From Podarcis filfolensis (Eukaryota), in the NCBI GenBank assembly GCA_964270895.1, contig OZ185439.1: a stretch of DNA of 64,000 bases. One strand, given 5' to 3'. Numbering within the stretch: the stretch's first letter is position 1; each line of letters begins with the position of its first letter. Position numbers and translations under genes: made by a program. The notes below the pieces were generated by a model. That model ran no database searches. It had not been told where the DNA came from and saw only the letters and a list, made by a program, of their open reading frames with translations. Below are positions 13,215 through 56,613 of this stretch, one piece after another.

Positions 13215-13260
13215 ATGGATCAAACTGTGATCTTCCTTTTGGTGCTACTCTCAGCATCAG
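13215..13260 (+). CDS. Gene 2 exon 1: signal peptide
   Basis: caagATGG strong Kozak context; MDQTVIFLLVLLSAS then G|gtaatg; phase 1 matches the CUB1 exon. Confidence 0.75.
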
Positions 13261-16200
13261 GTAATGTGCTGTGTGTGTGTGAGAGAGAGAAAGAGATCTT
13301 TGCTTCACCTTCTTTTCTGTCTTGCATATATAAAGTCGAACAGCAATTTCAGTAATTAAATGCTTAAATCAGAATTGAGAAATAAAGGACAAAGTCTGTA
13401 GCTCAGTGGTAGGGAAGGCTCCAAGTTCCAACCCGGGCATCTCCATGTAGGATTGGGAAAGTCTCTTGACTGAAACACTAACTCAGTATAAGGCAGCTTC
13501 ATATATTCCTATGAAGAAACGAATGTTGACTGTTTTCATATTTGAACTGCTTGAACCTTTTAGAGCATAGTCATAGGTATCAACTTTGCTGTAGAAAATT
13601 GACTGTCATTTGCTTTGTTGCGAACTTGGTCTTCAGATTATGGTCTGTGCATCCATCTAGAGTTAGTCACGCTTATGCACACTTTCAGGGAAGTAAGTGC
13701 CATTGATTTGTTTCTCAGGAAACAGGAACAGACCGCAAATCTTGTTGAGAGCAATGGGATAAGTTTGTCAAAACCAATTTATTCTACTGGTTTCAGTGGG
13801 GTGAACTTTGGCCGGATCGGTATGTTAGTGTTCGTTAGAAAATAAATTAAAACCCATTACTCTATTCATTTCACAACCTTGCCTTTGTTTGGGGGAAATT
13901 ATTGAATGATTTATTACTTTGATTACATTTGGCATTCAATTCAGGGAAGCTAGATTCCAGAGAATAGTTTTGAGATGTAGACTAGGTAGATTGTCTAGGG
14001 AACTTTTTCTAACCCTCTCCACTGGAGGCTTGAAAGAAAAACGGTTTTTAAAGAGGTCATTAAGAAGCTAAGTCAACATTATTATTTTTTTGTTAGGAAT
14101 CTTCCCAAACATATTGGGTGGTATTCAACTAAGTTTTACATATACCGTATTTTTCGCCCTATAGGACTCACTTTTTCCCCTCCAAAAATGAAGGCGAAAT
14201 GTGGGTGCGTCCTATGGGGCGAATACAGGCTTTCGCTGAAGCCTGGAGAGCGAGAGGCTCTCGCTCTCCATGCTTCAGGAAGCTCTGCGCGACCCTCCAA
14301 GCTGCGCCGGCCTCCGGAGGGTCGCACAGAGCTGCCTGTGCTCCCGGGGTCCGCGCAGCTCTGTGCAACACTCCAGAGCCTGGCGCCAAGCTGCGCCGGG
14401 CTCCGGAGGGTCGCGCAGAGCTGCCTGCCTGAAGAGCGTGCCCGGGCTTCGCACAGCTGTCCGCAAGCCTGGGGAGACCGGCGCGGCTCCCTAGGCTTGC
14501 AGATAGCAGGCTGTTCTGGGGGCTGGGGTCAGGGGAAGCTCGGGCTTCCCCCGCGCCAGCCCCGTGCCTGGGGGGAAGATATTTTTTTTTCTTTATTCCC
14601 CCCCCCAAAAAAACTAGGTGTGTCCTATGGGGCGGTGCGTCCTATGGGGCAAAAAATACGGTAGTAAACACACTGAAATTAATGAACATGACTAAGTTAG
14701 GTCCATTAATTTTAAAGGATCTGCTCTGGGCAGAGGTGCCAGCTTCTCCAGACTATTTAGGGGTCCTGTCATGACATCCCTACATCATGCACATGATATC
14801 GTGCAACGTTCTGATGTCACGCGTGTGGCACTGCATGGCATTCTGATGTTGTGCGACTTTATGATGTCACGTGCGTCCCCTCAATTGTCCAGAGAAGTTG
14901 GCCCGTCCTTCTCTAAAATAAGATGGGGGAGAAAGCTAAAGTGCTTTGGCCCCAGACACTGGCACCCTTGGCTCTAGGTAAACAGTGGCGTAGCGTGGGT
15001 TGTCAGCACCCGGGGCAAGGCAAGTAATTTGCGCCCCCTAACCCGTGGATTTGCGCCCCCTAACCCGTGGATTTGCCCTAACCCCCAGATGTTGCGCCCG
15101 GTGCGGCCGGCCCCCCCTGCACCCCCCATGCTACGCCACTGTAGGTAAACACCACCTGGAGTACAGAACCTCTGAGCATCAAATTTGTGCTCCTACTTAT
15201 ACTACCTATAGAACACTCAAGCTTGAAAGTCAGTTTTTACCTCAATGTAAAATGGATTAGATGTATTTTAGAGCGTAGCAGCTTCTTCAGCATGTGTCCA
15301 GTTGAAGTTCATGTTTTTGATGTGGTATGGGATCTCCCCTCCCCCCAATTGCCCCCAGAAGGTTGCAGCCATAGGCGCCAACTCCCTGGGGCCCTGGATG
15401 CCTGAGCACTCACAAAATTCCCCATAAAGGGGCTGGACACCCACAAAATTTGGTGCCAAGGCACCCATGGTCCTGGGGCACCCATGGTCCTGGGGCCAAG
15501 TTGGCACTCCTGGTCCCAGCAGATGTTGCCACAGGTTTCCTGCATGCACAGATTCAGGGTCTCCCTAATCATGGGCAATAGGATGGAAGATTCACTTCTA
15601 AAACAAGTTTAGAAGGATTGTGGAAAGTAAGCCCCTCCCACAGTCGATAGAACTGATCATTAATCACATACACTATTCCCAATCTTAAGGGGGAATGCCT
15701 CATATCTTACAGAGCCAAAATGGCACTCCAAAAATGAAAAAGGAGGCTATCAATAGGTTTAGGGGAAACCCAAGATTTGCAATTGTATGGAATTTTTTTA
15801 CAGAAGAAAAGTGGACCAAGCATTCCACACAGGGGACGGTGTCCTCAGGGGCCAATAAATATTGACTGTTGGGGGCAGGTACAGAAAACCAAGGGATAGA
15901 GGTGAGCAATTTGATTCAGTTCACATTTAAAGGTGAACCTACCTACCATGCACTTTCTGAAACAATACACAAACTAAAACACAGCCATCCTTTGAGATCT
16001 TATTCTGTGGATAAGTAAGGCATACACAAATGCATAGTCTAGGATAAAGGGTGCCTAAACATGCATATGGCACAAGCTGTTATTTATGTGTTGTTTTTAC
16101 CTGTATGGGCCTATGGCCGTAATAAATGAAATTTCAATTTCATGCATATGTAAGTGTAAATAACAGATGAAATGCATTATATTAGGGAATATAGCTTTGC

Positions 16201-18101
16201 AAAAAAATGTGTACAAAGGGGCAAATATGCATTCCGCATGTGTATTTTAGGAGAAATTTGCAGTAAAATACTGATAAATTTTATGAGAACCTTAAAAATT
16301 ACAAACTGGATTGGAAATGTGAAAAACTGAAAGGATTGGAAACATGAGGAATGGGGAGAAACCAAGATGCACAGATTTGCCCATTCCTAGGTAGGGGAAA
16401 CTGAATTAGAGTAGGGAATCTTGAACTGAGGCCACTGCACACGCCAACATTTTTGTTGTAGGTCTCACTTATTTAAAACTCATTTTTAAGTAGTTGTTCC
16501 ACTCCAGCTGGTTTGGACTATAAATTCCCTGGCTCAAGAATGTTTTGTATAGTGACTAGCTGGGCTGAAATATATTTTGATGCGAGTTGCGACTATTGTT
16601 TTGTAGGCTCTCCTGGGCATCAGTCTTAAACAAGAACCACTGTGTGCCAGATCCTGCCACCCACACAAAGGGGAAAAGTTCGGAAGCCAGGAGGGAAGGT
16701 GTGGCTGGGGATGGGAAGAGAAGGTTGGCAAGGGTTGGTCAGTGCCAGAAATTTCCTCTCTCTCCCTGCCAGAAACAGCGTAGGTTGTTGCGTGACCATG
16801 ACGTCTGTGGTGTGTGATGGTGTACTCAAACTGGTTTAGAGAGGAGGAATTCAATGACTTGGAAATGCTTTTCCTTTCCTACACATCACTCTTTCCTGTG
16901 TTTTCTTGTGCATTACCTATGTCATCACCCCCAGCATGGGTTGCATCCAATTTGAAAAACTTCCATTTTTTAAAATGAACCAACCACAACTTACACATTT
17001 TATTAATTAACTAATTGGAAATGCATCATTTTTTAATATTAAGTGTCCAAGGTACTATGCTGTGTAACATTTTTGCTTGAATTGTGTTTTACTTGACTCT
17101 GCCTTAAATAACTCTAGTTACTGAGTGTTGCTGTTACATTCAGGTCCTGCTTGCAGGCTTCGCACAGGCAGAACAGGATACTGGACTAGCAGCTTCATCT
17201 AGTTTCTGACTTCTGTAGTTATAGAGGTTGTCATAACTGAATTTGCATGGAAGCAAATATCTATGTGAATGCAAAGAATTTTTTCCCCCATTTGCCCAAA
17301 TGTTTCCTATTATGGAGAATATCCATTCCATGCAGCTATTTATGGCTGAGAAGGCATCAAGGGACTCTCCACCACTCCATTTGGTTGTATTCCATAAGCA
17401 TTACTTTTGAATTCCTGAAAACCCTTGAGAGGTTTCTCTGAGCATTCAGCCATAATTCTCAAGAGAAGTCTTTTTCAACCTGGTGCCTTCCAGATGTCAT
17501 TAGCCTATAACTCCCATCCCAAACAACATGAATGGGGCTGATGGGAGTAGGCGTCCAAAAACATCCAAAGAGCACCAGGTTGGTGAAACCTTCTCCAAAG
17601 GGTTCAATGATGGAGGCTTGAAGATCAGCCCACCACCATTCACAGTGGGAAGAGATGCTCAGAACATCATTTCCTCCTGAAGCAGAAATCTATTGGGTCT
17701 TAGCCTTTTCAAGAGCACTCTGCCCTCTCCTACCTACTCCCTGTCCTCAAGGTGAAGTATTTTTGTGTGTGTGTTGGGGAAGAGGGAAGAGGCAACAGGC
17801 TGTGAACATCAGCATGGATGTAAGAAAAATCGAGGTGGAGGAACCAGTCCACTTCAGTCCTGCTCACTGTAATTCCACAGACCTAGGTGCGCAAATAGAG
17901 CACTGAAAGCATAAGCTGTGGGTCAGTTAAAGCACAACAGTTGAGGTCCAATTCCTTCTTCTGCACTCATTCCCCAGTTTTGAACACCCAATCCCAGACA
18001 TCAGATATAGATCTTCAGTTCTGGTAATGTCTGGGTGAAAAAAACACATATGGGACATCTCTTAATTTAATATCTATAACATCTATATTCACACACACAC
18101 A

Positions 18102-18134
<33 letters not shown>

Positions 18135-21100
18135 CCACTTTATTGTGGTCCTTAGACCCAAAATACACAGTACAACAATAGTACATATTAACAGTTATTA
18201 AGGTGTAAGATCAGCCTTGCTGGCCAACAGAGGAGCTTTAGCTGGTACATACTGATTTCTTATTTTTATTGCCTTTAAGAAGTGTAACAGTATCAAACTT
18301 ATCCTCAAGGAGAACCTTAACATGAAATGGGTCAGTATTTCTAGGTTGTTCCGATAGTATTGGATTGATTAGATGCTGTCGAACCTGTTTATACAAACTA
18401 CAGTTTATTAAAATATGTTCCATATGTTCAACATCCTGGGAACATGTGCACAGCCTTATCTCGGTATGGGACACCAGCCAATATTCCCCTCAGCACTTCA
18501 GATGGGAAAGCATTTAATCTGACTTTAGAAAACAGATGGCGATAGTTAGATACAGTCAAATTCTTAAGCTAGGGAGATAACAAAAAACCTTGTAGGTATT
18601 GGAATCCTGACACAGATGGACCACAGGGCACATGTGAGCAAGATCGCAAATCACTAAAGGTGATATCCCATAAGCTCTGTTTCACAGTTTTGAGGGCAGT
18701 ATCATACCCCAGGTGGGTAAGAAAAAGGTTGAAATACCTATCAAAGAGGCCTTACATGCCATGGTTTTTGACCAGGAGCCGATGTACTCCTCATTTATCA
18801 AATGAAGGAGTAGCCCGCTTCCAAAGCCATACATGCAGATTCTTAGCCAATATTTCAAAGCACTCCACCAGTGGGTAGGGAGAGAGAGGAATTACATGCT
18901 GCCAGGCTACAAACATTGTAAAAATTAGTTTCATAGCAAGGCTCAATACACTCATTGTTCTTCCCCCTGGATATTATTTACACATCTCCCAAGTATTGCA
19001 GAAATAGCCTTTCATTGCTAATCATTATTTTTCATTATACTTTCCCACAGTCATACAGAAGAAGCTTAGCCTTCTTTAATAACCTTTAAATGTATTTATA
19101 TAAAACAATAAACTCCTCTATTAACCTTAACCTTTTTTAAGCTCAGCAGTAGTAGCTTTAGTAAATTCACTTATTAAATATTTCTATTTTGGTGTTCTTT
19201 AGCTTGTAGGACAAGTCTCCCCTTGTCCTACCTGGAGATGCTGGGAACTGAACCTGGGAACTTTTGCGTGGAAAGCAGATGCTCTGGCACCAAGCTGTAG
19301 CTTAGCTGAGAAGGAATGGAGCTAGGGTTCTCATTGCCTTACATGAGGAGGGCCCCCTTAAGGGGTACCAGGGATGTAGGTGTGGATCAGTCTACCTGAG
19401 ATGATGATTGCATTGCTATGCCACTGGGATGCTGAGCAACAGTCATAGTCATGTTTGCACATAGTCGAGACCCATGTTTATTCAAAGTCTGTGTCCTGTG
19501 TGTTCCTCTTTGACCTCTATGAAAGATACTTCCAACGGCAAGTGCAAAAGATTTGCTGTGGTGCAATTACTGTCTTCTGCAAATTATGCCTTTTACAGAG
19601 GTTTCGCTGGGGTTCTATGGAAGCATTTTGAGATTATACTAGCACCACTTCAGAAAAAAAGGATTATGAAAAGGAGCTACTCTGTGGGTGGTTAAGGGGC
19701 AGTAATCGTAAATTAAATGCTATCAGATTTCCAGAAGCCAGTAAAGTTATAAAGATGATCAGAAGAATGATTCATGTTGTTTGAATTTAAGTACTAACAT
19801 TAATTTCCTTAATACTAGTCAAACATTGTGAAATGCTGCTCTTAAAACAGAACTGAGTTTTGTTGAATAACGTCCCATTTCAAGAGTCTAAAAAGTAATT
19901 GTTCAAACTCCATTCTTTGATTCTCTCCCCCCCCCCCCCCCCGTTTGCAATTTATACAGTAACATAAAAATTTGCTCTGGCTGTGAGAGAAATCCTTTCC
20001 CAGCCCCAGTAGCATAGCTAAGGGGGGGGCAGGGAGGGTGGTCCACACTGGGTGGCAGGCTTACCCAAAGGGTGTCCCGGGTGTCGCACAGCCTGCAGAG
20101 TGCCCCAGCCACCACCTCCTGCTTGGCTGTGGATGGCCTGGAAAATCAGCATGGCCTGGAGCTCAGCTTATTTGCCCCACCCCATGGGCGGCTTGCCCTG
20201 CCCCTGTGGGCAGTGCATGCACCAGCCCCGGGCACCCAAGCGGCTTGCTACACCACTGCCCAGCCCTGTCAACTAGTGGCTAACCTCTGTCTACAGCAAT
20301 GTCAACCAGCAATCAAGGAAGGAGGGGGAGGGATGCAAGTTGGCAATGGTTCTTCTTTACTACTGCCAGCCACAACAGTGCTGTGCTGTGGCCTAATCCT
20401 GGAATTACAATCCAGGGGTATACTAGAAAGAGCAGGTTCTCCCTCATGTATGTCACTCTGGCCCTGCCTCCAGAAGTGAGCTAGTGTTGCAGATTGGCCT
20501 CCAATGTACAACTTCCAACTTGCACAGCTACTGCTTTGAGCTCAGATGAAATGGAACTTTTAGTATACAGTGCTCTTATTCATTTGGGGTTTCTTTTTGT
20601 TTGTAAGAACAAACTTGATTGCATTTAAGATTGAAGCCCTACATATGAGACCCCTAAGATTTGTAACTGTATTCCACTATAATGGTTGCAGAAATTGGAT
20701 TTGCTAGAGGAGTGTCCTTGTTCTTCTTCTTCTTGCTAGCAAAAGTGGCATATTTTTGTCGTTGCGAGCATGGCATTCAATGAAGCCATTTTTTTCTTCT
20801 TGATGAAGAACATTTCCTGCTACATATTAAACCACATCAATTCAATGAACAATTTTGAAATTGTATTCTTGCAATGTTTTCTTGATTCTCTTTCCTCTCT
20901 CCCTTTTCTTTTAAATAGGAGTGAAATCTGCCACAACAGTAGCTAAAGGTAAGCAGCATCTCTTCTGCTACATAATATAATGTTGAATTCCAGTTCCCGG
21001 CATGCTGACAATATAACATCGCTTTCTCATGCAGAAGTTTGCTAGTGGGTAGCCTGCAAACCCCTTCAGATGCTGTTGGAGGAGCCTAATTGCTGGGGCT

Positions 21101-22505
21101 GTGCATGCCCCTCAATGCAATCTAGGGCCCTATCTGTCACACTGGAGCAACCCAATCTGACCCAAGCTGATCTGGGTCCAACCCAGCCTGACCCAATATC
21201 TTGTGAATTGCCCTGTGATCTTTGGATGAAGGGCGGTATACAAATTTAAGAAATAATAATAAATAATAATAAGCTTGAAATTTTTTTTGGGGGGGGGCGG
21301 GAACAGTTCTAACTCAAGTTAAATATTTGGCCAGAAGAGGAGAAGGAGAAACTGCCTCCCCCCCCAACAGCATATTTCATTAGGGTACTAAATCAAACAC
21401 ATCAGATTCCCCCCCCCCAAAAAAAAATACCCATAGCAATGCATTCAGAAAAACCCTTGAATTCTTTGCATTCTGGTTTCTTGTTCTTATAAGAGTGCCT
21501 ACCATGAGCTGAACCTATCTATAGGCCTGTGCTGCAAAGAAAAGCTGGATTCACTGGGCTCGTAGCAGATCTAGTATTTATTCTTCTGCCAATGGCAGCT
21601 CTCTGCTTAATGGTGCAAAGATCACCTGGCTTCATGACACACAACAGATGTGATGCTGAAGATGGCTGAAGAGAACAGAAGGACCACATGGAATTCAGTC
21701 CTTGTGATTCTGTCCTCTGGGTCTTGGTGAAGCTGGAAAGTTGTTACTGGGATCTGCTTTTGGAGGGGTGGGGGGAAGCAATGCTTTGACACAATACTCA
21801 GCATTTATTTTTGTATTTGTTAGGTAGCTACAGTTGTGGCAAGACTTTCACAGATCCAACGGGGTCATTTTATCCCACATATTACACTGGTGGTGGAAAC
21901 GTCGTAGAGTGTCTCTGGACAATTGTTTCATATTATAAGATTCCTATAGTGCTAACCCTTGATTATATCAGGTAAGTCCTCCGTTGCTGAAAGCTAGTGT
22001 TTTGTACTGTCAGCATCTCGCTTGTACTTTGGCAATAGGTACCACTGAAGAGGAAATTATTTCGTCATGCTTCCTTTCCTCCTTAATCTTTTTCTTCACT
22101 TTCTGCTTCTCTTTTTCCACACTTACCCCTTTTCATGTTCTCCTGGTTCTTTCATCTTTTCTTTTTCTTTATATGTTTGCTTGTTTTGAATAACTAGAGC
22201 AAAAGGATGCAGAGTTGATATAATACATAAACTGATTGATTTGACATTTTTAAAAAAATACCTTGTGTAAATCATGTATAAGGGCTTTTCACCTGAGCAG
22301 CTTGTTGATGGATCGGGTTCATCTGCAAGGTGTGAGGGAGCTGACACCACCACCCTGTTGTGGGTTACAGGTGTGCCAGTTTAATTTGTTTTTCAAAAAT
22401 TTTCATCATTACTGAAATCACAAAGGAATAAAAGCATGCATATCCTTAAAGCATATATGTGAAAGATTGTATCATCCCTTATATACTCTATCACTGTGCT
22501 CTGCC

Positions 22506-28500: not shown

Positions 28501-29065
28501 GTCTGCATGTAGAAACTTCTTTTGTGACCACACCGGGAAATAACACACACAGATTGGGTGAACTGGGCCACATTTAATTTAACACTGCAAATCTGCAGAA
28601 GGGAACCAAGGTCAACCTCAGACATCTCCCTCTGTTCTCACAAAGGGAGATCTGATTATTTCTGTGGCCCACAGGACGTTTCCCCCAAGGGGCACAGGGT
28701 TGCTGGCTTCATTGGGTAAAAATACTGATGAATATTAACAGATAATAATGACATGCCTATTTCTTACCAATGCATATCAATGTTTCTCTTTGTGAACAGC
28801 TCCTTCTACACTTCCTGGTGAGTCCTACTTTTTCTATTCCAAGTCTGAATCTTTCTCAATAGGCATGAAGTATGAAAGATACATAGTGTGAAATCAATTA
28901 AGAATTGGGGGGGGGGGGAGCTCTTAGGTGTAGTTGCTAGTACATATTTGAAAGTCTGAAAGTATTAGTGATATATGTTCCAAAGGTAACTGAGTCATTA
29001 TTTCAAAACAAGGAAGAAATTGAACTGACTTTTGAAAAACAGTTTGGAAAATTGAATGGAAATTG

Positions 29066-46586: not shown

Positions 46587-46632
<46 letters not shown>

Positions 46633-49600
46633 TGTGTAAGTAACTGGAAGCGATAGATATCTTGTAGTGAGCTGTATTAGGCATGGCATAGCAACCTGGC
46701 TTTTGGTTACAACTTTGTTCCCCATTTCTTTTCTTCTAGGAACAAACTACCATCAGCTTTTTAGAAATCTTCCATTTCTATCCTGATGCAGTAGTGCTGA
46801 GGCTAGATGCTTCTTGGGTTTGGTGGTCCACTAAAATATATCCAGTGTTAGTTATACTGAGTAGTATACCTTCAGGCCCTTACTACAAGGATGGCCACTT
46901 GTTCCACAGATACTTTCCCCAAAGATTCTTGGGAATTTTAGCTTGTTAAGGGTGTGGAGAATTGTTAGGAGGCCCTCATCGCCCTCTCAAAGCTACAGTT
47001 GTCAGAGTTCCATGGAGAGAAGGTCTGGTTGTTCAATGTTTAGCTTAATATTAACACATTCTACCACAATCTGATCGATTCTGTTCTTTCTTACTAGTTC
47101 AGTCCACAACTGGAGAACTGACCACTAAAGTCATAGAGCGTAAGTCGGCATGTAGAAACTTCTTTTGTGACCACACCGGGAAATAAGACACACACATTGA
47201 GTGAACTGGGCCACATTTAATTTAACACTACAAATCTACAGAAGGGAACCAAGGTCAACCTCAGACATCTCCCTCTGCTCTGACAGAGGGAGATCTGATT
47301 ATTTCTGTGGCCCACAAGGAAGTTCCCTCAAGGGGCACAGGGTTGCTGGGTTCATTGGGTAAAAATACTGATGAATATTAACAGATAATAGTGGCATGTC
47401 TATTACTTACCAATGCTTATCAATGTTCCTCTTTCTTTTTGAACAGCTCCTACTCCTATTGGTGAGTCCTACTTTTTCATTACAAGGCTGAATCTTTCTC
47501 AATAGGCATGAAGTATGAAAGATAAATAGTGGGAAATTGATTACGAATGGGGGGGTGGAGCTCTTAGGTGTTATTGCTAGTGCATATTTGAAAGTTTGAA
47601 AGCATTCGTGATATATGTTCCAATGGTAACTGAGTCATTATTTCAAAACAAAGAAGAAATTGAACAGACTTTTGAATAAAGATTTTGGAAAATTGAATGG
47701 AATGTAAGTAGAATGTAAGCATAAGTCTGCATGCTTGAAACATCTTTTGTAACCACATAGGGAAATAAGATTCACAGACTGGGCGGAATGAGCCACATTT
47801 AATTTAACACAACAGATCTGCTGAAGGGAACCAAAGTGCACAATACTATCTTCAAATAGCAAACAGGGTGAACCGACTCTGACAAGAATAAGAGGCATCA
47901 TTTCACCTTAAGCCCCATAACTTAGATGGGGTTTTACAGGTTGGCCTCAAAGGTACTTCTTATTCTGTCAGTGGGTCTCACAACTCAGAAGGCAAGGCAA
48001 AGAAAAGTACCTAAGGGTGCTCACCAAACCTTAACTACCCGATAACTAATTAATTAACCTATTTAACAACAAAGTGATTTACAACCAACGAAACAGACAA
48101 GCAACTCTCACCCATGAGATGAAGTAAAACCAAGAGGAAAGAGAAATGCATTAAAAACATCCTGCCCACAAATATATTAGTAATTTAATAGGGGCAAGGA
48201 TATTGGAGGCCTCCAGCTTCAACCTAAAAGGGCCAATTATTTGCTTATTAATAACAGAAGGAGAGAGTTAATGCAATCAAGTTGGGGGAGGGAGGGAGGA
48301 AGATTTTAAATTAAGATGGATTTCATTTCACATTTCTCTGTACAAAATTCTATTTTGGCTTACATGCACAAAATATTGTGTTTTCTAGTATGTGGTGGCT
48401 CTCTCTACTTTCCAAATGGATCTTTCTCTGGACCATATTATCCTGGAAACGGTGCCATTATACAGTGTAGCTGGGAAATTCAAGTGAGCCCTGATAGACA
48501 AATAGTTCTCCAGTTTTCTTATATTAGGTAAGTGTAAGGAACTGAATGTTTTCCCATTTTCCACAGGCACCTGCACATGATGTTAATTCATGGTTTTGTC
48601 ATTACCTGAAGACTTTAATAGGTTATGGGTGGCTGTTCTTCTCTGTGCTTGAAAAGATAGATGTGCTGAGGTGTTTGCCTGAATTTGTAAGCACCAAACT
48701 ATGTAGGGAGGTCAGAATGTTTAAGCAAGCCCTGCCCTTAACCTGGCTGTCTGCTTTGCTCCTTCCCTCTCAGCCTCCAACTTTCTCTGTGTCACACAGG
48801 GAGGGTCTGCATAGAATTTCTACTTGTATTCACTTGAACACAAGCAGAACTCTCTGCATGAGGGACCCTGATTCTATCCAACAAACTTAGCATGTGATAG
48901 CCATCAGATTAAATCCTGCTAACTGGTCATGCGGTTCTGCCCTACACGAGATGAAATCCCATACAAATTAAAAACCTTCCAAAGAAAATACATCATAAAC
49001 ACATTTTTATTACAAACTCTACAAGTGGTAGATATTGGCCCTTTTCTGAAAACAAAAGGGTCCACTTTTTAATGCTTTCTTAGGAAATATGAAAGACAGG
49101 CCCTTTCACTGAGGCATTGAAAGATGAGTAAAAAAGACAAGTATTTTGTGAATCTTGTCTTTAAAGCAAATTATGCTGTTCCAGCCAGAGGAGACATCAT
49201 TCAATAGCAAAGTGGTTAAATTGTATGCATATATATTTGAATTCTTTGAATAAATTTGTAAATTTGAATATTTGAATTCTGGGCATTTTCAGGAGCAAGG
49301 CTGAGAAAGACCTATAACTGTGACACTGGAAAGCCATTGCCAGGTGGAGCAGACTGTACTGGACGTAATGGGCCAGAGGTCTGACATGACCTTGATATGT
49401 ACATAGGCATGCCACTCTTTTAGGTTGAGCTAATCTGGGATACATCTGAGAGCCTCATCAGCCACCTAGCTTATCACTCAGCTGACATTTACTGAAACAT
49501 CTCCATAGTATCATAGATGTAGGGTGGGGTTCTCACAGGCAGAACCAATCATAACATTACTTTAATATGTTCGGAATTCAGGTCAGCTCCACTGAATCTA

Positions 49601-52600
49601 TGTATTTACCTTTATATTTTGGCATATGTGTCACCAAAGAGAGAATCAAAGGGTGCTTGAATGTTCACTTGAATGTTCAATGTGGTATCTTTGCTCCTCA
49701 TATGTACATGTGATTTGCAGTGTCCAAACATTGTCATTGTCATCAAAATGCCAGCCCATATCTGCCCCCTCCTGGATTTATTATTTCCAGGGAAACCCTG
49801 ATAAGTAAAGAACGACAACGCTATTGCCAGTGAATCATTTGTGATAGTGACCCATTATGAAATTGAACCCCCATATATAAGCAACCTATGTAACATTTCT
49901 TTACTTAATGTGAAAATCTAATGTATGAAATGATGGCATAATTTTATACACAAAGAGTGACTTGCTGACCTACCTTTATACAGTCTGGACTGCAATAAAG
50001 AATATATTGTGATCTTCGATGGGTACCCGTATGCCTCCACTATTCTTGGAAGAACTTGCTCTGGCATCTATCTCAACTATACCTACATATCAACTTCCAA
50101 CACAATGACTATTCTGCTGCACAGAGATTCATATTACTCAGGAGATGGGTTTTATGCTTCTTACTATTCTATTCCACTAAGTAAGAGTTATCTATTTATC
50201 TAGTTCTAGGACATTTCTACTATCTGTTGTGTTAGATTAATGTTGTTCTGGTTTGAGGATGCAATGTAAGCTGAAAATCAACATATGTCTTGGGCAGAGA
50301 TGGGGAACTTGTGGTTCTCCAGATGGTCTCCAACTCCCATCAATCCCTGCCAGCATAGGCAAAGATCAGGGATGATGTGAGTTGTGATCTAGCAACATTG
50401 GGTGGGCCACAGGCTCCCCACCCTTTGTCTAGGATCATACCAATATACAAACCCATAGGCTGGTCGGATTATGGCACAGTTTCTGTGACCTATCCAGAGA
50501 TGAATAGGATATTTACTTTGCTTAACTTTTCCTGTTTGCATGAATGGTATCAGTTTGCAGTTGGATAGATCAAAGGTATTTTTCCTATGAGGGACCAAAG
50601 TAAGATCTGAATGCACAATTTTCTGCCATGTTAAAATTTCTAGCCCCTTGACATGCACACTTTGAAGAATAAGGCAATGCTTCACTTTAGCAACAACTGA
50701 AGCACCATCTCGCCACTGACACCTTTTTTTGTTAATGTTGTAGGAGAATATTTTATTCCACCAGGCTTTTTGTATGTTTTAAGCATCCTGATTTACTTGC
50801 ATTTCACTTTAAATGTTCTCCCTTTAATTGTATTGATATTTTTTTGCTGTATAAATAAGGTGTGTGCACGCGCGCGCACACACACACACACACACTGGTG
50901 ACTTTTGTCAACGAAGAATAGCTGCCATATGTTCCTAGGTTATTGGATATATTACTGCTAGGATCTTAACATCAGTGTAATAGTACTTTTATTGTACTAT
51001 TTGTTTACCTAAATAGGAACAGAAACAACTACTGAACCACCTCTCAATGAATCAACAGCTGGTAAGACCTTGTTCTTTTTCTTTAATGTCATTCATTTTA
51101 AATGCTCTCCCTTTAATTGTATTCTTGTATGATTAATGTGTGTGTGTTTGTGTGTGTGTGCGTGCACACACACACTGATGACCAATCAATGAAAAATATC
51201 TGCAATATATTACTAGGTTACTGGATAGATGACTGCTGGGATCTCGATATCTTCAGTGGAATATCTGTACTATTTATTTTGGTTCCTTTAATAGACTTAA
51301 CATTTGAATCAAGTGCTAGTGAAGCAACAACTGATAAGATGTTTTTCCTTTTCTTCTGTGTCTTTTGTTAGGTAATAAGGCAAATGGTTAAACATGACAC
51401 TCAAAGAAACTAGATGCTTCTTTTCACAGTTGTATGATTTAGGCACCTCTGAGCTTGCAGAGGATTGCATGCTCAAGATCCAGGGAAGCTGTTCTTCACC
51501 AAAGATATATCTGAAACCACTTGCTATCTTCTCTCTGTTGTGGAAAAGAAGCAGTAGATTTTACTCCTCAGGGAATGGCATTAGATTACACAGTAGAGGC
51601 ACTCTGAAAAGAACATTTTTCATATACTTAAATCCCAACAAAACGGAGTACAAGCAACACTGATTGTTTGTATAATGGTCTTTGTCATGGTGGAAGGGTG
51701 TAGCAGGTGAGGGCACAGAACTCAATGTTGTGACTACAATTTCCCAACTTTTTACCATTTAAATGCTAATTAGACACAAATTGATCTCCCTTTTGTTTTG
51801 TTTTTCATTTGTACAGCTCTTCCTACAAGTTTAGCACCAGTTCCTGCAAGAAGTAAGTTCCAATTTCTCCCTAAAACATGCATGTGAAAATTGCAGATTT
51901 TGCTGATTTGGGTTGCCTAGCTGAAAAGTCTGTGTGTTCAAAGGAAACATTGAAACTGAGTATTCCAAATACTTCAAATTTCTGAAAACGTGGTAAAGCC
52001 GTTCCATGGCAGCTTCTTTATGAGCTCAAACAAGCCCCCGCTTGCCTGACATATCATTCACCAAGGTTGCCCCTACTCATAAGTAAATGTAAAAAACATT
52101 ACAGTATTTAATATGGTTTCTATGTGCCCCATTCAGCGCTCTCGTGTTCCGGAGAATACATGCTTGCACGCATCAGCAGGGACTATCTTGGGTTGCTGGG
52201 CTACAATGCAAGCGAAGTATCCCTGAATACTTCAGACCCCTTCTGCACACCTCAGATTACTCAAGACTATGTGGTCTTCGAGGTACCATATAGTGGGTGT
52301 GGCACAGTAAGAAAGGTAAGACAATGCGTTCTTAAAAATATTGTCAGTATCCAATGCACTTGTTCTGTTTGTGCAAGGATTTTTGCATGTGCTATGGAAC
52401 TTCTCCGCTATCCTCTCCCTGCACATCTCACACCCTCCTCAAATCTATTTCAGGGTTGTTGGAAACCCCAGAAGAGATTTAAGGGGTTGTGGTCAGAGGA
52501 GGGGGGAAAGTTCTGCTGCACAAGCTTAAATCCTTGCAATGATGGAACTAGTTACTCAGTACCACATTGGGTACTGCACATTATCTGTTATCTGGTTCGT

Positions 52601-55600
52601 ATCTTTGTAACATTACCCTGCTGTTTAAAGTTTGGAAAAGTATTTCACCCACCTTTTGGCTATAACATCTGAATGATCTGGCTTAGAGAGAGCCTTGGGA
52701 AATCCATGCTGCCTCTTCTCCACTCTGCCATGGAGCTAGTTTCCTCTTCTTCTTTCAACTATATTTCTAGGAAATGTCAGCGCTGCCCTTCATAGACTTT
52801 GACACCATTGAACGATGTGTTTAATTCAGACGTGAAACTACCACTTTCAGAACTTGGGTTAAATAGCAAGTGTCAGCAATATGCCACACCATTTAAAGCA
52901 GACCGTATTGTGGGTAATTCCTGACATTTCTGTTAATCATAGGAAATACAGGAGTGGGGAAATTGCTCCAGAAAGAGTAAGTGGTATAAGGCGGGGGGAA
53001 AGCGTTATGTTCCCGAGATTGTCCTCCACTTTTAAAAAGCCAGTAAATTAGAGGTAGCATTATGATCACGCTGCCTGGCCCTTTGAATGCTTTGCATTAT
53101 GCTCAGCTTTTTCACTTCTGAGGACAAAACCCGTCATGTTAATACACACAAACAAACAAATAAACTCAGTTATTCTTAAAGAAACCCATAGCATTTTAAA
53201 GATAAATGTCATAAAAGTCAGATATTTGTTGGTATATTAATTTGAATTAAAAGATGTAGCAATCTTTCTGCACTTTTCTGTGTTTCTCTTCTCAACTACT
53301 GAATGCATTATATACTTTTATCTTTCTCAACTTTTTCAGTGAGAATACAGTAAAATTCCAGATTATATAAGGTGGTTTTTTAATGGTAATAAGTCTGAAA
53401 TATCAGCACATTCTAAAGTGGTTAAGTATATTGGGTGTGTTTTATATGACAGGTCCTAATTTACAAATATTATTGACATAGATCTTTCTCCCCTGTCTTT
53501 TAGCAGTCAAATAATGACACCATCACCTATTCCAACGTAATCAAGACATTAGCCACTGGTTATATCATTACAAGAAGGAAAAACTTCCAATTTCATATTA
53601 TGTGTGAAATGAACGCAATGACTGTTGTAGAGACGATGTTTGTTGCCCAAAATTCCATTGACATTACTGAAAGAAAACTTGGCAACTACAGTGTGGCACT
53701 TTCATTCTATGAATCTTCATCCTTCAACGTTTCAGTTCTCAGTTTTCCATACTTCGTGTACCTCAACCAGGTTCTCTATCTCCAAGCTACTCTCAACAGT
53801 TCTGATCCAAACTTAGTACTATTTCTAGACACATGTGTAGCATCTCCATACCCTGGTGACTTCAGAACTCTGACCTATGACTTAATCAAGAATGGGTGAG
53901 TATATTTTAGATAAACATGTTTAGATATCCACTTAGAAGAAGGGCTTTCCTTTTGGCTTATATGACAGCAGAGTTAATACTAAGCATGCAATGCCATTCA
54001 CACTCATCTGGAATAAACCATACTGAGCTCAATTGGATTTCTGCATAGGCACATATAGGATTGTACTTAAATGTTTCTTTGTGGTATGAACAAGTGGAGT
54101 TGCTTTACTCTCAAACTGACTCTGAAATTCACTTTTTGATTCTGACATATTTCTTAAGAAAATCTATAAAGAGTTACAGAGCCTACTTGCTATTACTTGT
54201 TCCCGAATATAACAATAAATATGGTTGTTTGCTACTAACTCATTGTGTCATCAGTCAAAGAGTCTTAGACAAAAGCAAGGAAGGCAAATACTTGTTATTG
54301 CAATGGCCAGCCTGCATGCAGGACCTCTCCCCAATTGCTTCCCAGTAACTGGTATTCAGAAGCATACTGTCTTTGACAATGGAGGCAAAGCAGAGCCTTC
54401 ATCACTAGTACCTTGATAGTTGAATCCTCCACGAACATCTTATGGGAGTGAATCCCAAAGTTTAACAATGTGCTGTGCTGTGTGAAGTACTTTCCTTTGT
54501 CTGCTCAGAATTTTCTAACTTGAAGCTTTGTCACTTATTGATATTTCTTCTCATCCTTCTCCAGCATGGTCTTTAGTCACCAAAGATAACATACTTCAGA
54601 ACTCCATAAAGGATTCATCTAAAGTAATTATGTAAACAAACTTGGTTCTTTTATTTTCAGATGTGTGCGAGACCCAACCTTCTTAAATCTGAGTGAACTC
54701 GGATTTAACTCAAGCAACAATCAAGTTCGTTTCAAGTTCAACTCTTTTAAGTTTCTTTATGAACACAATCAAATTTATCTGCAATGCAAACTAGTAGTGT
54801 GTCAGGCACATGATTATTCATCCCGATGCTACCAGGGATGTTTAACTAGAAGGAAGAGGGATACAGAAAAACTTCAGGATAAAGTGGATGTGGTTGTGGG
54901 ACCAGTCAAACTGCATAAAGAAACCATTGAAGACAAAGGACAGGGTAACTTTTATTTTTGATTCCTTTTTTTGCTACTTTTTTCCTGATGATTGCAGACC
55001 AGAATTGAAATAAATGCATGGGCACATTTGCTGCATTGAATAACTACCATTTTATTGAACATTAAACCAAATTTGCGGAGGGAAAGTATAGGTGTGGGAA
55101 TGAACAAATCAGGAAATCACGTAGGTATAAGACAAACCAATCCCTTGCTGGGTCAAAGGTAAACCATTTTGTTTACTCCTTACCCCAGCCACACCCTGAC
55201 GGTGAATTGGGAGGCCTTCATTCACCACCACCCCTTTGGACCCCCAAACTCCAGGTGGATGAGGCTAGTTGACTTCAGAAGAAGTCTCTCTCCTATCTCC
55301 AAGCTCTGCAGACCTGAGATGCAGGCCTCAGAAACAAACAGTCACCTCAAATGGAGCCTAAAGGGATCACCAAGCTACCTTATCAAGTTCCCCTTGTGGC
55401 ACCTCTGTGCCAAAGATTACCTTAAGGAAAAACAACACTCAAATGGTCAGATTAACCTATAACGCAAGCAGAACAGTCAAGAGCCAGATGAACCTGTCAG
55501 CCAAAATAGCCTAGTATTAAGGCACTGCACCTAAACAGTCTCCCATCCCACTTTAAAGTATGGCATAGGCAAAAACTCCAGCTGCAGAACAAGGCAGGTG

Positions 55601-56613
55601 GGCCCAAAAATCCTACTTGGCCCTGAAGCAAATCATACTGTGATGAAGGTTGGGAGAGAGGGTGAGTGCCTGATAAAACAGAGGGGGAGGGGAGGGGAGG
55701 TGGGCTTTTAAAAGGCTCTGTCACCCCCCCCCCCCGAGTGCTCTCAGATGCAAACTCCCACCACCACCCAAAGCAATCTGGGCGGTGGAATAATGATTTT
55801 CAAAATATATTCCGAAGTATCTTGAAATACTAATTACTCAAGAACAAAGTGTTGTTAAAATATTCTACTACTTTGTTTAAATAATATTAAAACCAATATT
55901 TATTCCTAATTTGCCTGCCAAAAGCATAGTAACATCACACAATGAAATCTCATTCTGTGTTGCTTCCACTCTTCGGGTAGCATTTCCCTAATGGGCAACT
56001 TTTTGAGAGTCACATGCCACTGATGCATGGAAAGATAATGTAAAGATGGGCAGAATAAAGAAATTGACTCTTATGTTTGGAACATAGGATGCTGCCTTAG
56101 ACAAAGCCAGGCAATTGTCAATCTAACTCAGAGTTCTTTAGATGGACTCACAGTGACTCTCCAGGGTTTCAGACAGAGGTCTTCTCCAGCCCTATCTGAA
56201 GATGCCAGGAATTTGACCTGAGCCTTCTGCCTTCAAAGCAGTTGTTGCCATTCAAAGACGAATTTGCCCTCTAACAAAACTAATATATATACATTTAGAG
56301 AAAGGTACAAAGTGTTTTCCTTGTATGTTTATATTGCTGTAACTTGCCCAGGGATCTTATGGGGAAGAACAAGTAAGAAATTTCATACGTACGTACATAC
56401 ATACATACATACATACATTATCTGAAAAATTGTTCCAAACTGTGTTTTTTTATTCTATTTACAGAACTGGCTAAGAGTATGAATCTAGAAAAGAAAGAAG
56501 CTCTCAGCCCACTTGCTGTTACTACTGTACTTTTGGCAGCCATTGTCTTTGTTCTGTCTGGCTTACTTATAAGCAGCAAACTGAGAAGGAAAAACTATCA
56601 CCAAATCTACTGA
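13215..56613 (+). CDS. Complete DMBT1/CUZD1-family gene: signal peptide - 3 CUB domains separated by PTS (mucin-like) linkers - ZP - furin site - TM - tail; 38 exons, 981 aa if all are included; no SRCR exon found
   Basis: The 38 proposed exons sum to 2946 nt = 982 codons including stop, with consistent phases and GT-AG ends. ZP and TM exons parallel gene 1 in size and phase (179/173, 392/389, 284/278, 149/158 nt). Confidence 0.85.
13398..13510 (+). mobile_element. Decayed tRNA-derived SINE fragment
   Basis: gtagctcagtggtag A-box-like head followed by SINE-like body (gggcatctcc...cagtataaggcagcttc). Confidence 0.45.
14145..14661. mobile_element. Young GC/CpG-rich Tc1/mariner-superfamily (pogo/Tc2-like) MITE
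   Basis: 23-bp TIRs ccgtatttttcgccctataggac / gtcctatggggcaaaaaatacgg (21/23 match); TA on both sides (14143-14144, 14662-14663); internal GC-rich repeats. Confidence 0.88.
14983..15141. mobile_element. hAT MITE with perfect 8-bp TSD
   Basis: TIRs cagtggcgtagc / gctacgccactg; TSD taggtaaa at 14975-14982 and 15142-15149; internal 22-bp tandem repeat. Confidence 0.92.
17471..17590. mobile_element. Decayed palindromic MITE (family resembling 4149)
   Basis: caacctggtgc / gcaccaggttg and ctcccatc / gatgggag inverted arms. Confidence 0.6.
18135..18900 (-). mobile_element. LINE 3' fragment with Cys/His knuckle, RTE-X-like (5' end approximate)
   Basis: Minus-strand RLCTCSQDVEHMEHILINCSLY; ends in caataaagtgg followed by a (TC)n/(TG)n tail at 18085-18135. 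Confidence 0.5.
21824..21971 (+). CDS. Gene 2 CUB1, first half
   Basis: tttgttag|GTAGC...ATCAG|gtaagt; GSYSCGKTFTDPTGSFYPTYYTGGGNVVECLWTIVSYYKIPIVLTLDYI; missed by the ORF track. Confidence 0.88.
22506..22546. repeat. (GAAA)n microsatellite
   Basis: Direct read, about 10 units. Confidence 0.95.
23430..23614 (+). CDS. Gene 2 CUB1, second half
   Basis: ctccacag|TTTGGAC...AACAG|gtaacc; LDCTREYIQIYDG...GQICDG...LHRESYRAGSGFFAYY. Confidence 0.92.
24694..24729 (+). CDS. Gene 2 PTS micro-exon (36 nt)
   Basis: tttatag|...|gtaatg; phase 1-1; xLATSPVPELTT. Confidence 0.75.
25581..25728. mobile_element. hAT-type MITE
   Basis: TIRs cagtgctttttt / aaaaaagcactg; flanks tgttgaat / tgtttaat (7/8 TSD match). 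Confidence 0.82.
26160..26189 (+). CDS. Gene 2 PTS micro-exon (30 nt)
   Basis: ctcacag|...|gtaagt; phase 1-1; xPELTTEPVY. Confidence 0.75.
26796..26822 (+). CDS. Gene 2 PTS micro-exon (27 nt, TTLPPETT type)
   Basis: ctttag|CAACAACTCTTCCTCCAGAAACCACTA|gtgagt; phase 1-1. Confidence 0.75.
27621..27674 (+). pseudogene. Truncated copy of the CUB2 first-half exon (acceptor intact, donor missing)
   Basis: Matches 31135 onward (PFQCGGILLEPFGYIHGP), then breaks into intron sequence; in-frame TAA at 27680-27682. Confidence 0.85.
27744..27770 (+). CDS. Gene 2 PTS micro-exon (27 nt, TTLPPETT type)
   Basis: Same exon and splice sites as 26796. Confidence 0.72.
27919..28156 (+). mobile_element. tRNA-derived SINE, Squam3-like
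   Basis: A box gtggtgtagtgg, B box ggttcgcatctcc, tail (aaatcc)n; TSD ccatctgag at 27913-27921 and 28155-28163; empty site visible near 30470 (ggaccatctgagtacaatc). Confidence 0.85.
28455..28496 (+). CDS. Gene 2 PTS micro-exon (42 nt, LSTTGEP type)
   Basis: ttactag|...CAGT|gtaagt; phase 1-1; xLSTTGEPTTIVTQ. Confidence 0.75.
28800..28817 (+). CDS. Gene 2 PTS micro-exon (18 nt)
   Basis: gtgaacag|CTCCTTCTACACTTCCTG|gtgagt; xPSTLP. Confidence 0.72.
29445..29695 (-). mobile_element. CpG-rich 250-bp insert, probable retroelement 5' end (copy 1)
   Basis: Foreign to both flanking modules; minus strand begins ggacttcc, recalled as an L1-like 5' terminus; family unverified. Confidence 0.5.
30298..30324 (+). 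CDS. Gene 2 PTS micro-exon (27 nt, TTLPPETT type)
   Basis: Same exon and splice sites as 26796. Confidence 0.75.
31135..31291 (+). CDS. Gene 2 CUB2, first half
   Basis: ttcttcag|CGCCC...CGGAA|gtaagt; PFQCGGILSEPYGYIYGPDYPGNGRLVQCAWEIKAP. Confidence 0.92.
32435..32625 (+). CDS. Gene 2 CUB2, second half
   Basis: ctacag|TATGAAC...CAAG|gtaaaa; MNCRTDYIAVYDG...GRICLA...LYRNSFNAGPSFTAYY. Confidence 0.92.
33291..33810 (-). mobile_element. Young 5'-truncated L2 LINE with (AAT)n tail
   Basis: Open frame LVLTFKALNGLGPVYLKERL...LWNALPSDVK...FRRHLKAALF; (ATT)n run at 33291-33368 on the plus strand is the 3' tail. Confidence 0.88.
34058..34138 (+). CDS. Gene 2 PTS exon (81 nt, internal 27-nt triplication)
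   Basis: ttttgcaag|...CCTA|gtaaga; ETTTEHILQ ETTTEHILQ ETTTEHIDP. Confidence 0.72.
34252..34296 (+). CDS. Gene 2 PTS micro-exon (45 nt)
   Basis: gaactag|...GCTG|gtaaga; xSVTPEATTEATTAA. Confidence 0.75.
35158..35387 (-). mobile_element. Sauria SINE (short form) with 14-bp TSD
   Basis: Reverse complement of the 62155 element; TSD tactgagctgtatt at 35144-35157 and 35388-35401. Confidence 0.9.
36277..36318 (+). CDS. Gene 2 PTS micro-exon (42 nt, LSTTGEP type)
   Basis: xLSTTGEPTIIVTQ; AG/GT intact. Confidence 0.72.
36626..36643 (+). CDS. Gene 2 PTS micro-exon (18 nt, PSTPP)
   Basis: gaacag|CTCCTTCTACACCTCCTG|gtgagt. Confidence 0.72.
37248..37499 (-). mobile_element. CpG-rich 250-bp insert (copy 2)
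   Basis: Same junctions as 29445. Confidence 0.5.
38102..38128 (+). CDS. Gene 2 PTS micro-exon (27 nt, TTLPPETT type)
   Basis: Same exon and splice sites as 26796. Confidence 0.72.
38922..38975 (+). pseudogene. Truncated CUB2 first-half exon copy with 1-nt deletion
   Basis: Acceptor intact; gaacc-tttgga frameshift; TAA at 38981-38983. Confidence 0.85.
39043..39069 (+). CDS. Gene 2 PTS micro-exon (27 nt, TTLPPETT type)
   Basis: Same exon and splice sites as 26796. Confidence 0.7.
39218..39599. mobile_element. Fused Squam3-like (+) / Sauria SINE (-) junction
   Basis: Squam3-like tail aaatcc joins directly to agaagcggcttaatc (interior of the 35158-type SINE) at about 39455. Confidence 0.88.
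40033..40074 (+). CDS. Gene 2 PTS micro-exon (42 nt, LSTTGEP type)
   Basis: xLSTTGEPTTIVTQ; AG/GT intact. Confidence 0.72.
40382..40399 (+). CDS. Gene 2 PTS micro-exon (18 nt, PSTPP)
   Basis: Same as 36626. Confidence 0.72.
41003..41254 (-). mobile_element. CpG-rich 250-bp insert (copy 3)
   Basis: Copy of 37248 at +3755. Confidence 0.5.
41857..41883 (+). CDS. Gene 2 PTS micro-exon (27 nt, TTLPPETT type)
   Basis: Copy of 38102 at +3755. Confidence 0.7.
42677..42730 (+). pseudogene. Truncated CUB2 first-half exon copy (duplicate of 38922)
   Basis: Copy at +3755 with the same frameshift. Confidence 0.83.
42798..42824 (+). CDS. Gene 2 PTS micro-exon (27 nt, TTLPPETT type)
   Basis: Copy of 39043 at +3755. 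Confidence 0.7.
42973..43354. mobile_element. Fused SINE junction, second copy
   Basis: Copy of 39218 at +3755. Confidence 0.88.
43788..43829 (+). CDS. Gene 2 PTS micro-exon (42 nt, LSTTGEP type)
   Basis: Copy of 40033 at +3755. Confidence 0.7.
44137..44154 (+). CDS. Gene 2 PTS micro-exon (18 nt, PSTPP)
   Basis: Copy of 40382 at +3755. Confidence 0.7.
44882..44923 (+). CDS. Gene 2 PTS micro-exon (42 nt, LSTTGEP type)
   Basis: AG/GT intact; xLSTTGEPTTIVTQ. Confidence 0.72.
45231..45248 (+). CDS. Gene 2 PTS micro-exon (18 nt, PSTPP)
   Basis: Same as 36626. Confidence 0.72.
45965..46006 (+). CDS. Gene 2 PTS micro-exon (42 nt, LSTTGEP type)
   Basis: AG/GT intact; xLSTTGEPTTIVTQ. Confidence 0.72.
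46314..46331 (+). CDS. Gene 2 PTS micro-exon (18 nt, PSTPP)
   Basis: Same as 36626. Confidence 0.72.
47098..47139 (+). CDS. Gene 2 PTS micro-exon (42 nt, diverged LSTTGEP type)
   Basis: ttactag|...GAGC|gtaagt; xQSTTGELTTKVIE. Confidence 0.7.
47447..47461 (+). CDS. Gene 2 PTS micro-exon (15 nt)
   Basis: gaacag|CTCCTACTCCTATTG|gtgagt; xPTPI. Confidence 0.7.
48389..48527 (+). CDS. Gene 2 CUB3, first half
   Basis: ttttctag|TATGT...ATTAG|gtaagt; CGGSLYFPNGSFSGPYYPGNGAIIQCSWEIQVSPDRQIVLQFSYI. Confidence 0.92.
49984..50180 (+). CDS. Gene 2 CUB3, second half
   Basis: atacag|TCTGGAC...CTAA|gtaaga; LDCNKEYIVIFDGYPYASTILGRTCSG...LHRDSYYSGDGFYASYY. Confidence 0.92.
50295..50427. mobile_element. Decayed palindromic MITE
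   Basis: gatggggaacttgtgg / ccacaggctccccacc and ctcccatcaatccct / agggatgatgtgag arms. Confidence 0.55.
51017..51061 (+). CDS. Gene 2 PTS micro-exon (45 nt)
   Basis: aaatag|...GCTG|gtaaga; xTETTTEPPLNESTA; an in-frame alternative AG lies 6 nt downstream. Confidence 0.72.
51817..51852 (+). CDS. Gene 2 linker micro-exon (36 nt)
   Basis: ttgtacag|...AGAA|gtaagt; xLPTSLAPVPAR. Confidence 0.75.
52137..52315 (+). CDS. Gene 2 ZP-N start
   Basis: attcag|CGCTC...AAAG|gtaaga; LSCSGEYMLARISRDYL...DPFCTPQIT...PYSGCGTVRK. Confidence 0.93.
53504..53895 (+). CDS. Gene 2 ZP-N end / ZP-C start
   Basis: tttTAGCAG tandem acceptor; (Q)SNNDTITYSNVI...IMCEM...[16 protein letters not shown]...TYDLIKNG|gtgagt. 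Confidence 0.93.
54661..54944 (+). CDS. Gene 2 ZP-C end with furin site RRKR (54848-54859)
   Basis: ttttcag|ATGTGTG...CAGG|gtaact; CVRDPTF...[29 protein letters not shown]...VVVGPVKL. Confidence 0.95.
56384..56418. repeat. (TACA)n microsatellite
   Basis: Direct read. Confidence 0.9.
56465..56613 (+). CDS. Gene 2 last coding exon: TM and tail
   Basis: ttacag|AACTGG; ELAKSMNLEKKEALSPLAVTTVLLAAIVFVLSGLLISSKLRRKNYHQIY*. Confidence 0.9.

Follow-up and report, generated by a model that had tools for sequence, protein, structure and literature searches.

The window analyzed here, which is the whole 64-kb stretch of DNA and contains 0 N bases, carries two genes on the same strand. The first, hereafter gene 1, is present with its 3′ part and is the orthologue of DMBT1 proper, while the second, gene 2, runs on the plus strand from an ATG at 13215 to a TGA at 56613. 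The stop codon of gene 1 lies at 7669, and the two genes are 5.5 kb apart, in agreement with an earlier sequence-only reading of this DNA, which had placed gene 2 at that distance downstream of a DMBT1-like gene. The same reading had paired the ZP and transmembrane (TM) exons of the two genes, and rightly so, with their phases being identical and their sizes nearly equal (179, 392, 284, and 149 nt in gene 2; 173, 389, 278, and 158 nt in gene 1) and with the motifs it quoted being found in both genes, at 53801 and 54776 in gene 2 and at 3785 and 6156 in gene 1. Gene 2 is also, as had been proposed, distinct from gene 1, having a signal-peptide exon, a TM exon, and a stop of its own. Further downstream, 3′ of gene 2, two copies of an interspersed repeat are found at 62061-62435 and 63730-64000, with alike frames reading ...SMTKPLL.NQSS..K.RLPSRRSG.

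The CUB, ZP, and TM exons of gene 2 were located by tblastn with the evident coding pieces, which gave pairs of CUB half-exons at 21.8/23.4, 31.1/32.4, and 48.4/50.0 kb, followed by three exons for the ZP module and one for the TM segment. The micro-exons were found by a scan for stop-free, S/T/P-rich pieces that are bounded by AG...GT and lie in phase 1-1, and all exon boundaries were fixed with a close orthologue as guide. The rebuilt coding sequence (Table 1) consists of 39 exons, 2976 nt, and 991 aa, with canonical AG/GT at all junctions and a frame that closes, and none of the 39 exons contains a stop or a frameshift or has lost a splice site. The open spliced frame described earlier is therefore real, but the earlier model of 38 exons and 981 aa was one exon short: if the 30-nt phase 1-1 exon 2 is taken out of the present model, exactly the earlier one results. 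With its flanks, exon 2 is 100% identical to P. lilfordi, and the start methionine and N-terminus of gene 2 are held in common among Podarcis, P. lilfordi, Zootoca, Pogona, and snakes.

Table 1. Coordinates of the features in the 64-kb window
Feature	Position	Strand	Description	Basis
Gene 1, 3′ part	775-7669	+	DMBT1 proper orthologue	tblastn, ZP tree
Gene 1 CUB halves	~775-921, 1868-2065	+		
Gene 1 ZP exons	2467-2639, 3491-3879, 6053-6330	+		
Gene 1 TM exon	7512-7669	+		
Candidate TATA box	13148-13154	+	TATATAT, ~60 nt 5′ of gene 2 ATG	read directly
Exon 1	13215-13260	+	ATG and signal peptide MDQTVIFLLVLLSAS, ends in phase 1	
Intron 1 element	14143-14663	.	~520 bp, GC-rich, 29-nt terminal inverted repeats (90% complementary)	
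Exon 2	20919-20948	+	30 nt, GVKSATTVAK, overlooked in earlier model	in P. lilfordi and Zootoca proteins
CUB1 half 1	21824-21971	+	phase 1 to 2	tblastn, Pfam
CUB1 half 2	23430-23614	+	phase 2 to 1	tblastn, Pfam
Linker 1	24694-30324	+	72 aa, 42% S+T, 7 micro-exons	
Linker 1 micro-exons	24694-24729, 26160-26189, 26796-26822, 27744-27770, 28455-28496, 28800-28817, 30298-30324	+		
Tandem-repeat array	26200-47702	+	bears micro-exons; ~1.09-kb units, 90-98% identity	self-BLAST
Broken CUB2a copy 1	27620-27682	+	acceptor intact, in-frame TAA after ~20 codons	
CUB2 half 1 (CUB2a)	31135-31291	+		tblastn, Pfam
CUB2 half 2	32435-32625	+		tblastn, Pfam
Linker 2	34058-47461	+	201 aa, 42% S+T; exons 34058-34138 and 34252-34296, then 16 micro-exons (42, 18, 27 nt)	
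Linker 2 micro-exon starts	36277, 36626, 38102, 39043, 40033, 40382, 41857, 42798	+		
Linker 2 micro-exon starts, continued	43788, 44137, 44882, 45231, 45965, 46314, 47098, 47447	+		
Broken CUB2a copy 2	38921-38982	+	1-nt deletion and stop	
Broken CUB2a copy 3	42676-42737	+	1-nt deletion and stop	
CUB3 half 1 (CUB3a)	48389-48527	+		tblastn, Pfam
CUB3 half 2	49984-50180	+		tblastn, Pfam
Linker 3	51017-51852	+	exons 51017-51061 and 51817-51852	
ZP-N exon	52137-52315	+	phase 1 to 0	Pfam
ZP-N end, interdomain linker, ZP-C start	53504-53895	+	phase 0 to 2	Pfam
ZP-C end, RRKR furin-type site, hydrophobic strand VDVVVGPVKL	54661-54944	+	phase 2 to 1	
TM exon	56465-56613	+	TM helix, short basic cytoplasmic tail, TGA	
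Candidate poly(A) signal	56743-56748	+	ATTAAA, 130 nt 3′ of gene 2 stop	

Pfam calls three split CUB domains in the gene 2 protein, with the first halves covering profile positions 1-45 and the second halves positions 53-110, and both the ZP-N and ZP-C domains; together with the domain HMMs, these calls place the CUBs before a C-terminal ZP module, which is the CUB-ZP order of the DMBT1 family. The ZP module contains 10 cysteines (4 + 6, residues 661-908) and, as read from the sequence only, is followed after ZP-C by an RRKR furin-type site at residues 911-914, the hydrophobic strand, a TM helix at about 959-979 (the strongest hydrophobic window being 955-980), and the basic tail, while the protein as a whole carries 11 N-glycosylation sequons. 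Linkers 1 and 2 combine 42% S+T with 17-19% P and are built from repeated 9-, 14-, and 6-residue units, that is, from mucin-like tandem repeats. The SP-(CUB-mucin)x3-ZP-TM plan that had been drawn for the gene earlier is thus the one we recover, with three CUBs separated by S/T/P-rich micro-exon linkers, whose composition suggests that they may be O-glycosylated. In a PDB sequence search, the CUBs match cubilin, neuropilin, and PCPE at E 1e-16 to 1e-24 and the ZP module matches uromodulin, GP2, and betaglycan (TGFBR3) at E 1e-13 to 1e-9. Spermadhesin-like CUBs were also considered (E 1e-6 to 1e-12), but each of the three CUBs has cubilin as its top match and higher ranks are also taken by neuropilin or PCPE, with PSP-I/II and aSFP standing lower in the search, and the resemblance to spermadhesins appears to be generic; gene 2 is a multidomain TM protein and not of the spermadhesin type, which is a secreted single CUB.

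Homologues were sought by phmmer, with the 131-aa ZP exon as the query against 1.84 billion representatives, and by two word-index searches. The P. lilfordi proteins CAI5774931.1 and CAI5774932.1 (833 and 853 aa), two isoforms that differ by a single 42+18-nt unit, have a ZP exon 97% identical to that of gene 2 and are named "hypothetical protein" at source and "CUZD1" in UniRef, and a Zootoca vivipara RefSeq model of 867 aa is named "DMBT1-like isoform X2". Domain HMMs give the proteins of both species the organization of gene 2, SP-CUB-linker-CUB-linker-CUB-linker-ZP-TM, with per-segment identities to gene 2 over the aligned positions of 92-100% in P. lilfordi and 54-90% in Zootoca. The architecture of gene 2, micro-exons included, is hence already present as database models in sister species. 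RefSeq models from three further lacertids are truncated (481 aa in P. muralis and L. agilis, 386 aa in P. raffonei), and the two 481-aa models begin at an in-frame intronic ATG (MHKILCFLVCGG..., 48364-48388) directly before CUB3a. These models bear on two statements of the sequence-only reading: its expectation that standard annotation would mislabel the gene and drop micro-exons describes the truncated models and the UniRef name "CUZD1" well, while the P. lilfordi and Zootoca models have the full plan; and its view of gene 2 as a distinct family member is right insofar as the gene is neither DMBT1 proper nor CUZD1, but these same two species already have models with exactly this architecture. 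No description of gene 2 was found in the literature on DMBT1L1, Cdcp3, and DMBT1 in lizards, and within the literature searched the gene is an uncharacterized new member of the known DMBT1 family. Two search results were set aside, namely the best match of 981 aa (P0001), a merged seabird model whose length equals that of the earlier gene model by coincidence, and a Logan contig (P0155) that had been considered as splicing evidence and falls inside one exon.

As had been claimed, no exon for SRCR, the hallmark domain of the DMBT1 family, is found in gene 2. A tblastn search of the window with 163 family proteins, many of them SRCR-rich, gave no match outside the CUB, ZP, and TM exons, and an HMM of 175 SRCR domains, applied to the window in six-frame translation with the --max option, reached E 1.7 at best, on the wrong strand, with the scan including the interval 13261-21823 and both searches being empty on both strands. 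The same HMM served as its own positive control at the orthologous locus of Pogona, where it finds an SRCR exon at E 2.8e-47 between the signal-peptide exon and CUB1a. In the window, the corresponding interval (13261-20918) holds exon-free sequence and the ~520-bp inverted-repeat element only; this element looks like a lineage-specific, MITE-like insertion, since it sits in a stretch of intron 1 that has no alignment to the P. lilfordi locus. Within the window, gene 2 has none of the SRCR domains of which a strict definition of the DMBT1 family asks for at least one.

The linkers of gene 2 differ in length from those of its close relatives. The units of the array that bears their micro-exons exceed the 500-nt period limit of Tandem Repeats Finder, which at score 200 returned nothing, and were delineated by self-BLAST instead. 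The array micro-exons are of three types, of 27 nt (TTLPPETT), 42 nt (LSTTGEPTTIVTQ), and 18 nt (PSTPP), with splice-site positions being unchanged in 21 of the 21 copies. All 7 copies of the 27-nt exon are identical, whereas 25% of the aligned flank columns are variable, a flank figure that is partly inflated by structural differences; the same comparison for the 42- and 18-nt copies is uninformative, being dominated by a single divergent terminal copy. Superimposed on the basic units is a higher-order unit of 3756 bp in ~2.4 copies, for which 35847-41003 and 39603-44757 are 99.2% identical over 5.2 kb, and because this divergence is far below the ~3-4% between the window genome and P. lilfordi, the duplication would be very recent or else the copies may have been subject to gene conversion. 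In P. lilfordi, the locus (L001) aligns collinearly at 96-97% identity and has fewer array units, namely two 27-nt exons, two to three 42+18 units, and one broken CUB2a copy. Judging from these unit counts, the array appears to have expanded in the window species with a mixing of linker-1 and linker-2 units, such that linker-1 units now seem to stand within linker 2 as well. By a domain-gap measure, linkers 1, 2, and 3 span 75/202/32 aa here, 46/73-93/32 aa in P. lilfordi, and 80/58/50 aa in Zootoca, where linker 1 contains a three-micro-exon cassette ~2.5 times over and linker 3 contains the ETTTAPPLNESTTGI exon 3 times (P0212); the amplified cassettes differ between the window species, P. 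lilfordi, and Zootoca. As we picture it, the linkers would be put together from 15-45-nt phase 1-1 micro-exons within tandem genomic repeats of 1.1-3.8 kb that are 90-99% identical, and linker length would therefore shift by the gain and loss of units, in the manner of a VNTR.

The same array bears on the size of the product, as the locus could be real and the protein still be nearer 833-867 aa than 991 aa, either because only a subset of the micro-exons is spliced or because the array has been inflated in assembly. The two P. lilfordi isoforms, one 42+18-nt unit apart, the far fewer units at the collinear P. lilfordi locus, and the near identity of array units, which reaches the value given above for the 3756-bp unit and may have let assembly affect copy number in either genome, would all fit such a shorter protein; yet all micro-exon copies are open in frame and share one strong AG/GT context, and most copies are 2-10% different, which is enough for them to assemble apart. 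We regard this as a serious alternative, although an unlikely one, and retain the full 991-aa model.

Three further pieces of the array are broken copies of CUB2a, which consist of the first ~60 nt of the exon and, in all three cases, keep the full polypyrimidine tract and AG of the true exon (31135). The first of them runs directly into the intron that precedes a 27-nt exon and is also present in P. lilfordi (L001 23610-23704), where it is skipped by the gene model. These copies could act as decoy or poison acceptors, adding a stop if used. Selection on the coding sequence was gauged by dN/dS between the window and P. lilfordi, a single species pair with 2370 aligned single-copy coding bases and few substitutions, which gave 0.63 overall, 0.33 for ZP+TM (13 N / 11 S, Fisher p 0.01), and ~1.5 for the three CUBs pooled (20 N / 4 S), the last being indistinguishable from 1. 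The ratio for ZP+TM indicates that the ZP is constrained, while the CUBs may be either fast-evolving or under relaxed constraint. If gene 2 were decaying or NMD-silenced in the window species, broken CUB2a copies with intact acceptors and stops would be poison exons and the CUB ratio would reflect neutral drift, but this is hard to square with 39 exons that are all free of stops, frameshifts, and lost splice sites, with the purifying selection on ZP+TM, with the presence of one of the broken copies in P. lilfordi, where the gene model passes over it, and with the retention of all three CUBs at 81-84% identity to Zootoca. Such decay seems to us quite improbable, and gene 2 is a genuine and in all probability functional gene of a lacertid.

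The descent of gene 2 was addressed with a maximum-likelihood tree of 53 ZP modules, in which the gene 2 ZP lies within a tetrapod DMBT1-like group (95/92). A clade termed B here (96/97) unites turtle CUBx2-ZP proteins, proteins of the same plan from platypus and marsupials that are named "DMBT1-like", and a squamate subclade (97/91) with gene 2 among its members, whereas DMBT1 proper (99/98) joins the DMBT1 of mammals to proteins from birds and turtles and to a squamate group (100/100) in which gene 1, and not gene 2, is placed. Frog and cobra CUZD1 fall outside the DMBT1-like groups (100/98), and the check by ZP phylogeny that had been proposed for the gene accordingly puts its ZP outside CUZD1. 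When the squamate gene-1 and gene-2 groups are constrained to be monophyletic, the log-likelihood falls by 56 units (AU p 0.0008, for a group chosen after the tree had been seen). Given these clades and the AU rejection, gene 2 cannot be regarded as a young duplicate of gene 1, and the idea of a tandem duplicate has to be corrected to that of membership in an old amniote paralogue clade. As for the suggestions that the exons are part of gene 1, in a single long DMBT1 transcript, or that gene 2 is the lizard CUZD1, the common strand, the 5.5-kb spacing, and the UniRef name of the P. lilfordi protein speak for them; gene 1, however, ends in its own TM exon and stop, the gene 2 signal-peptide exon is used in four squamate lineages, and the CUZD1 proteins, besides their place in the tree, have two abutting CUBs. 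We consider both suggestions very improbable indeed.

Within the squamates, the ZP of an SRCR-rich P. muralis protein (P0219) is sister to those of the lacertid CUBx3 genes (96/81), and its coding sequence, which was looked for in the window, is absent there. The Hemicordylus member of the clade is SRCR-rich, the Pogona plan is SRCR-CUB-CUB-ZP, with the SRCR being left out of some isoform models, and the snake plan is CUB-SRCR(1-2)-CUB-ZP, with a signal peptide in common with other squamates. No counterpart of CUB2 was found in Pogona, and no close eutherian protein was returned in a search from a marsupial clade-B member, the candidate counterparts there being human DMBT1L1 and mouse Cdcp3. 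Since P0219, Pogona, snakes, and cordylids all bear SRCRs, the simplest inference is that SRCR was lost on the lineage of the lacertid CUBx3 genes. The SRCR-less three-CUB form is common to Podarcis and Zootoca, and its most likely origin is within Lacertidae, subsequent to a duplication from an SRCR-bearing sister gene; it looks lacertid-specific because the other squamate clade members retain SRCRs. As a separate observation, P0219 and P0229 represent a third lacertid gene, seen in P. muralis and P. raffonei, with the plan SP-SRCRx2-CUB-SRCRx3-ZP and a CUB ~69% identical to CUB1. The best explanation of the data, which taken as a whole we hold to be likely, is that amniotes possess an old DMBT1-like paralogue directly 3′ of DMBT1 proper, of which gene 2 is the version found in lacertids. 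The position of gene 2 would be consistent with that of DMBT1L1, which a preprint lists, with SPADH1, beside human CUZD1 (10.1101/2025.03.27.645633). On the P. lilfordi contig OX395130.1 (L001 1-4329), a 1455-aa model with IGFBP, trypsin, PDZ, and CUB domains stands upstream of the orthologue; it is apparently a merger of HTRA1 and the DMBT1-proper gene, which would make the gene order HTRA1 - DMBT1 - gene 2.

A second paralogue, likewise old, is thus present at the amniote DMBT1 locus, and its domain content shows great plasticity: lacertids have CUBx3, snakes CUB-SRCR-CUB, and Pogona SRCR+CUBx2, whereas turtles, platypus, and marsupials have an SRCR-less CUBx2, and this plasticity is masked by the names in use (DMBT1, DMBT1-like, CUZD1, hypothetical). 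The gene also makes a case for annotation, with 15-45-nt micro-exons and near-identical repeats leading to truncated models in some RefSeq genomes, and it offers a natural comparison between two versions of one mucosal ZP glycoprotein, the one SRCR-based and the other CUB-only. It is otherwise an instance of ordinary, though tidy, domain shuffling, and nothing that is known is overturned by it.

With regard to function, the product of gene 2 would be a type I membrane glycoprotein made up of a signal peptide, three CUBs, the ZP module, the RRKR site, the hydrophobic strand, the TM helix, and the basic tail. By analogy with uromodulin, GP2, and DMBT1, it may be delivered to the apical or secretory-granule membrane, where cleavage at RRKR would free the blocking strand and might be followed by shedding and/or ZP-driven polymerization, with the CUB heads presumably being displayed on stiff O-glycosylated stalks and binding luminal ligands. 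A bolder proposal, which we put forward tentatively and consider rather unlikely in its entirety, would see the locus as exon shuffling driven by repeat dynamics, in which the cassettes behave as a fast VNTR, non-allelic exchange has moved linker-1 units past an intact CUB into linker 2, along with a truncated CUB2 exon, the decoy acceptors may tune the balance between the full-length and a truncated secreted CUB protein, and the CUBs are diversifying as a lineage-specific mucosal recognition that replaces SRCR binding.

Among known systems, the closest comparison is with DMBT1 (gp340/salivary agglutinin/hensin/muclin), which shares with gene 2 the neighborhood, with HTRA1 upstream in P. lilfordi, the two-exon CUBs, the S/T/P-rich spacers that each lie on their own small phase-1 exon, the 10-Cys ZP module, exon phases included, the furin-type site, the TM, and a repeat copy number that differs among close relatives. 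It differs in that the DMBT1 models examined have 7-13 SRCRs as opposed to 0 in gene 2, which instead has three CUBs, each on its own stalk, and in that the ZP modules of the two form separate clades. The clade-B proteins of turtle (Trachemys XP, 625 aa), platypus, and marsupial (Dromiciops XP_043836314, 586 aa) are SRCR-less like gene 2, but have two CUBs on short stalks or none, whereas gene 2 has three stalked CUBs; Pogona XP_072851539.2 has the signal peptide and the NYHQIY tail of gene 2 but an extra N-terminal SRCR exon. CUZD1 likewise combines CUB, ZP, and TM and is SRCR-less, although its two CUBs abut and no mucin-like spacer is present, whereas the three CUBs of gene 2 have linkers of 72 and 201 aa between them. 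Uromodulin and GP2, finally, share with gene 2 the 10-Cys ZP-N/ZP-C module, anchorage in the membrane, and a hydrophobic strand that comes after a basic cleavage site, features on which the proposed shedding and polymerization of the gene 2 product are based, but carry N-terminal EGF and D8C/D10C domains and a GPI anchor where gene 2 has CUBs and a TM helix.
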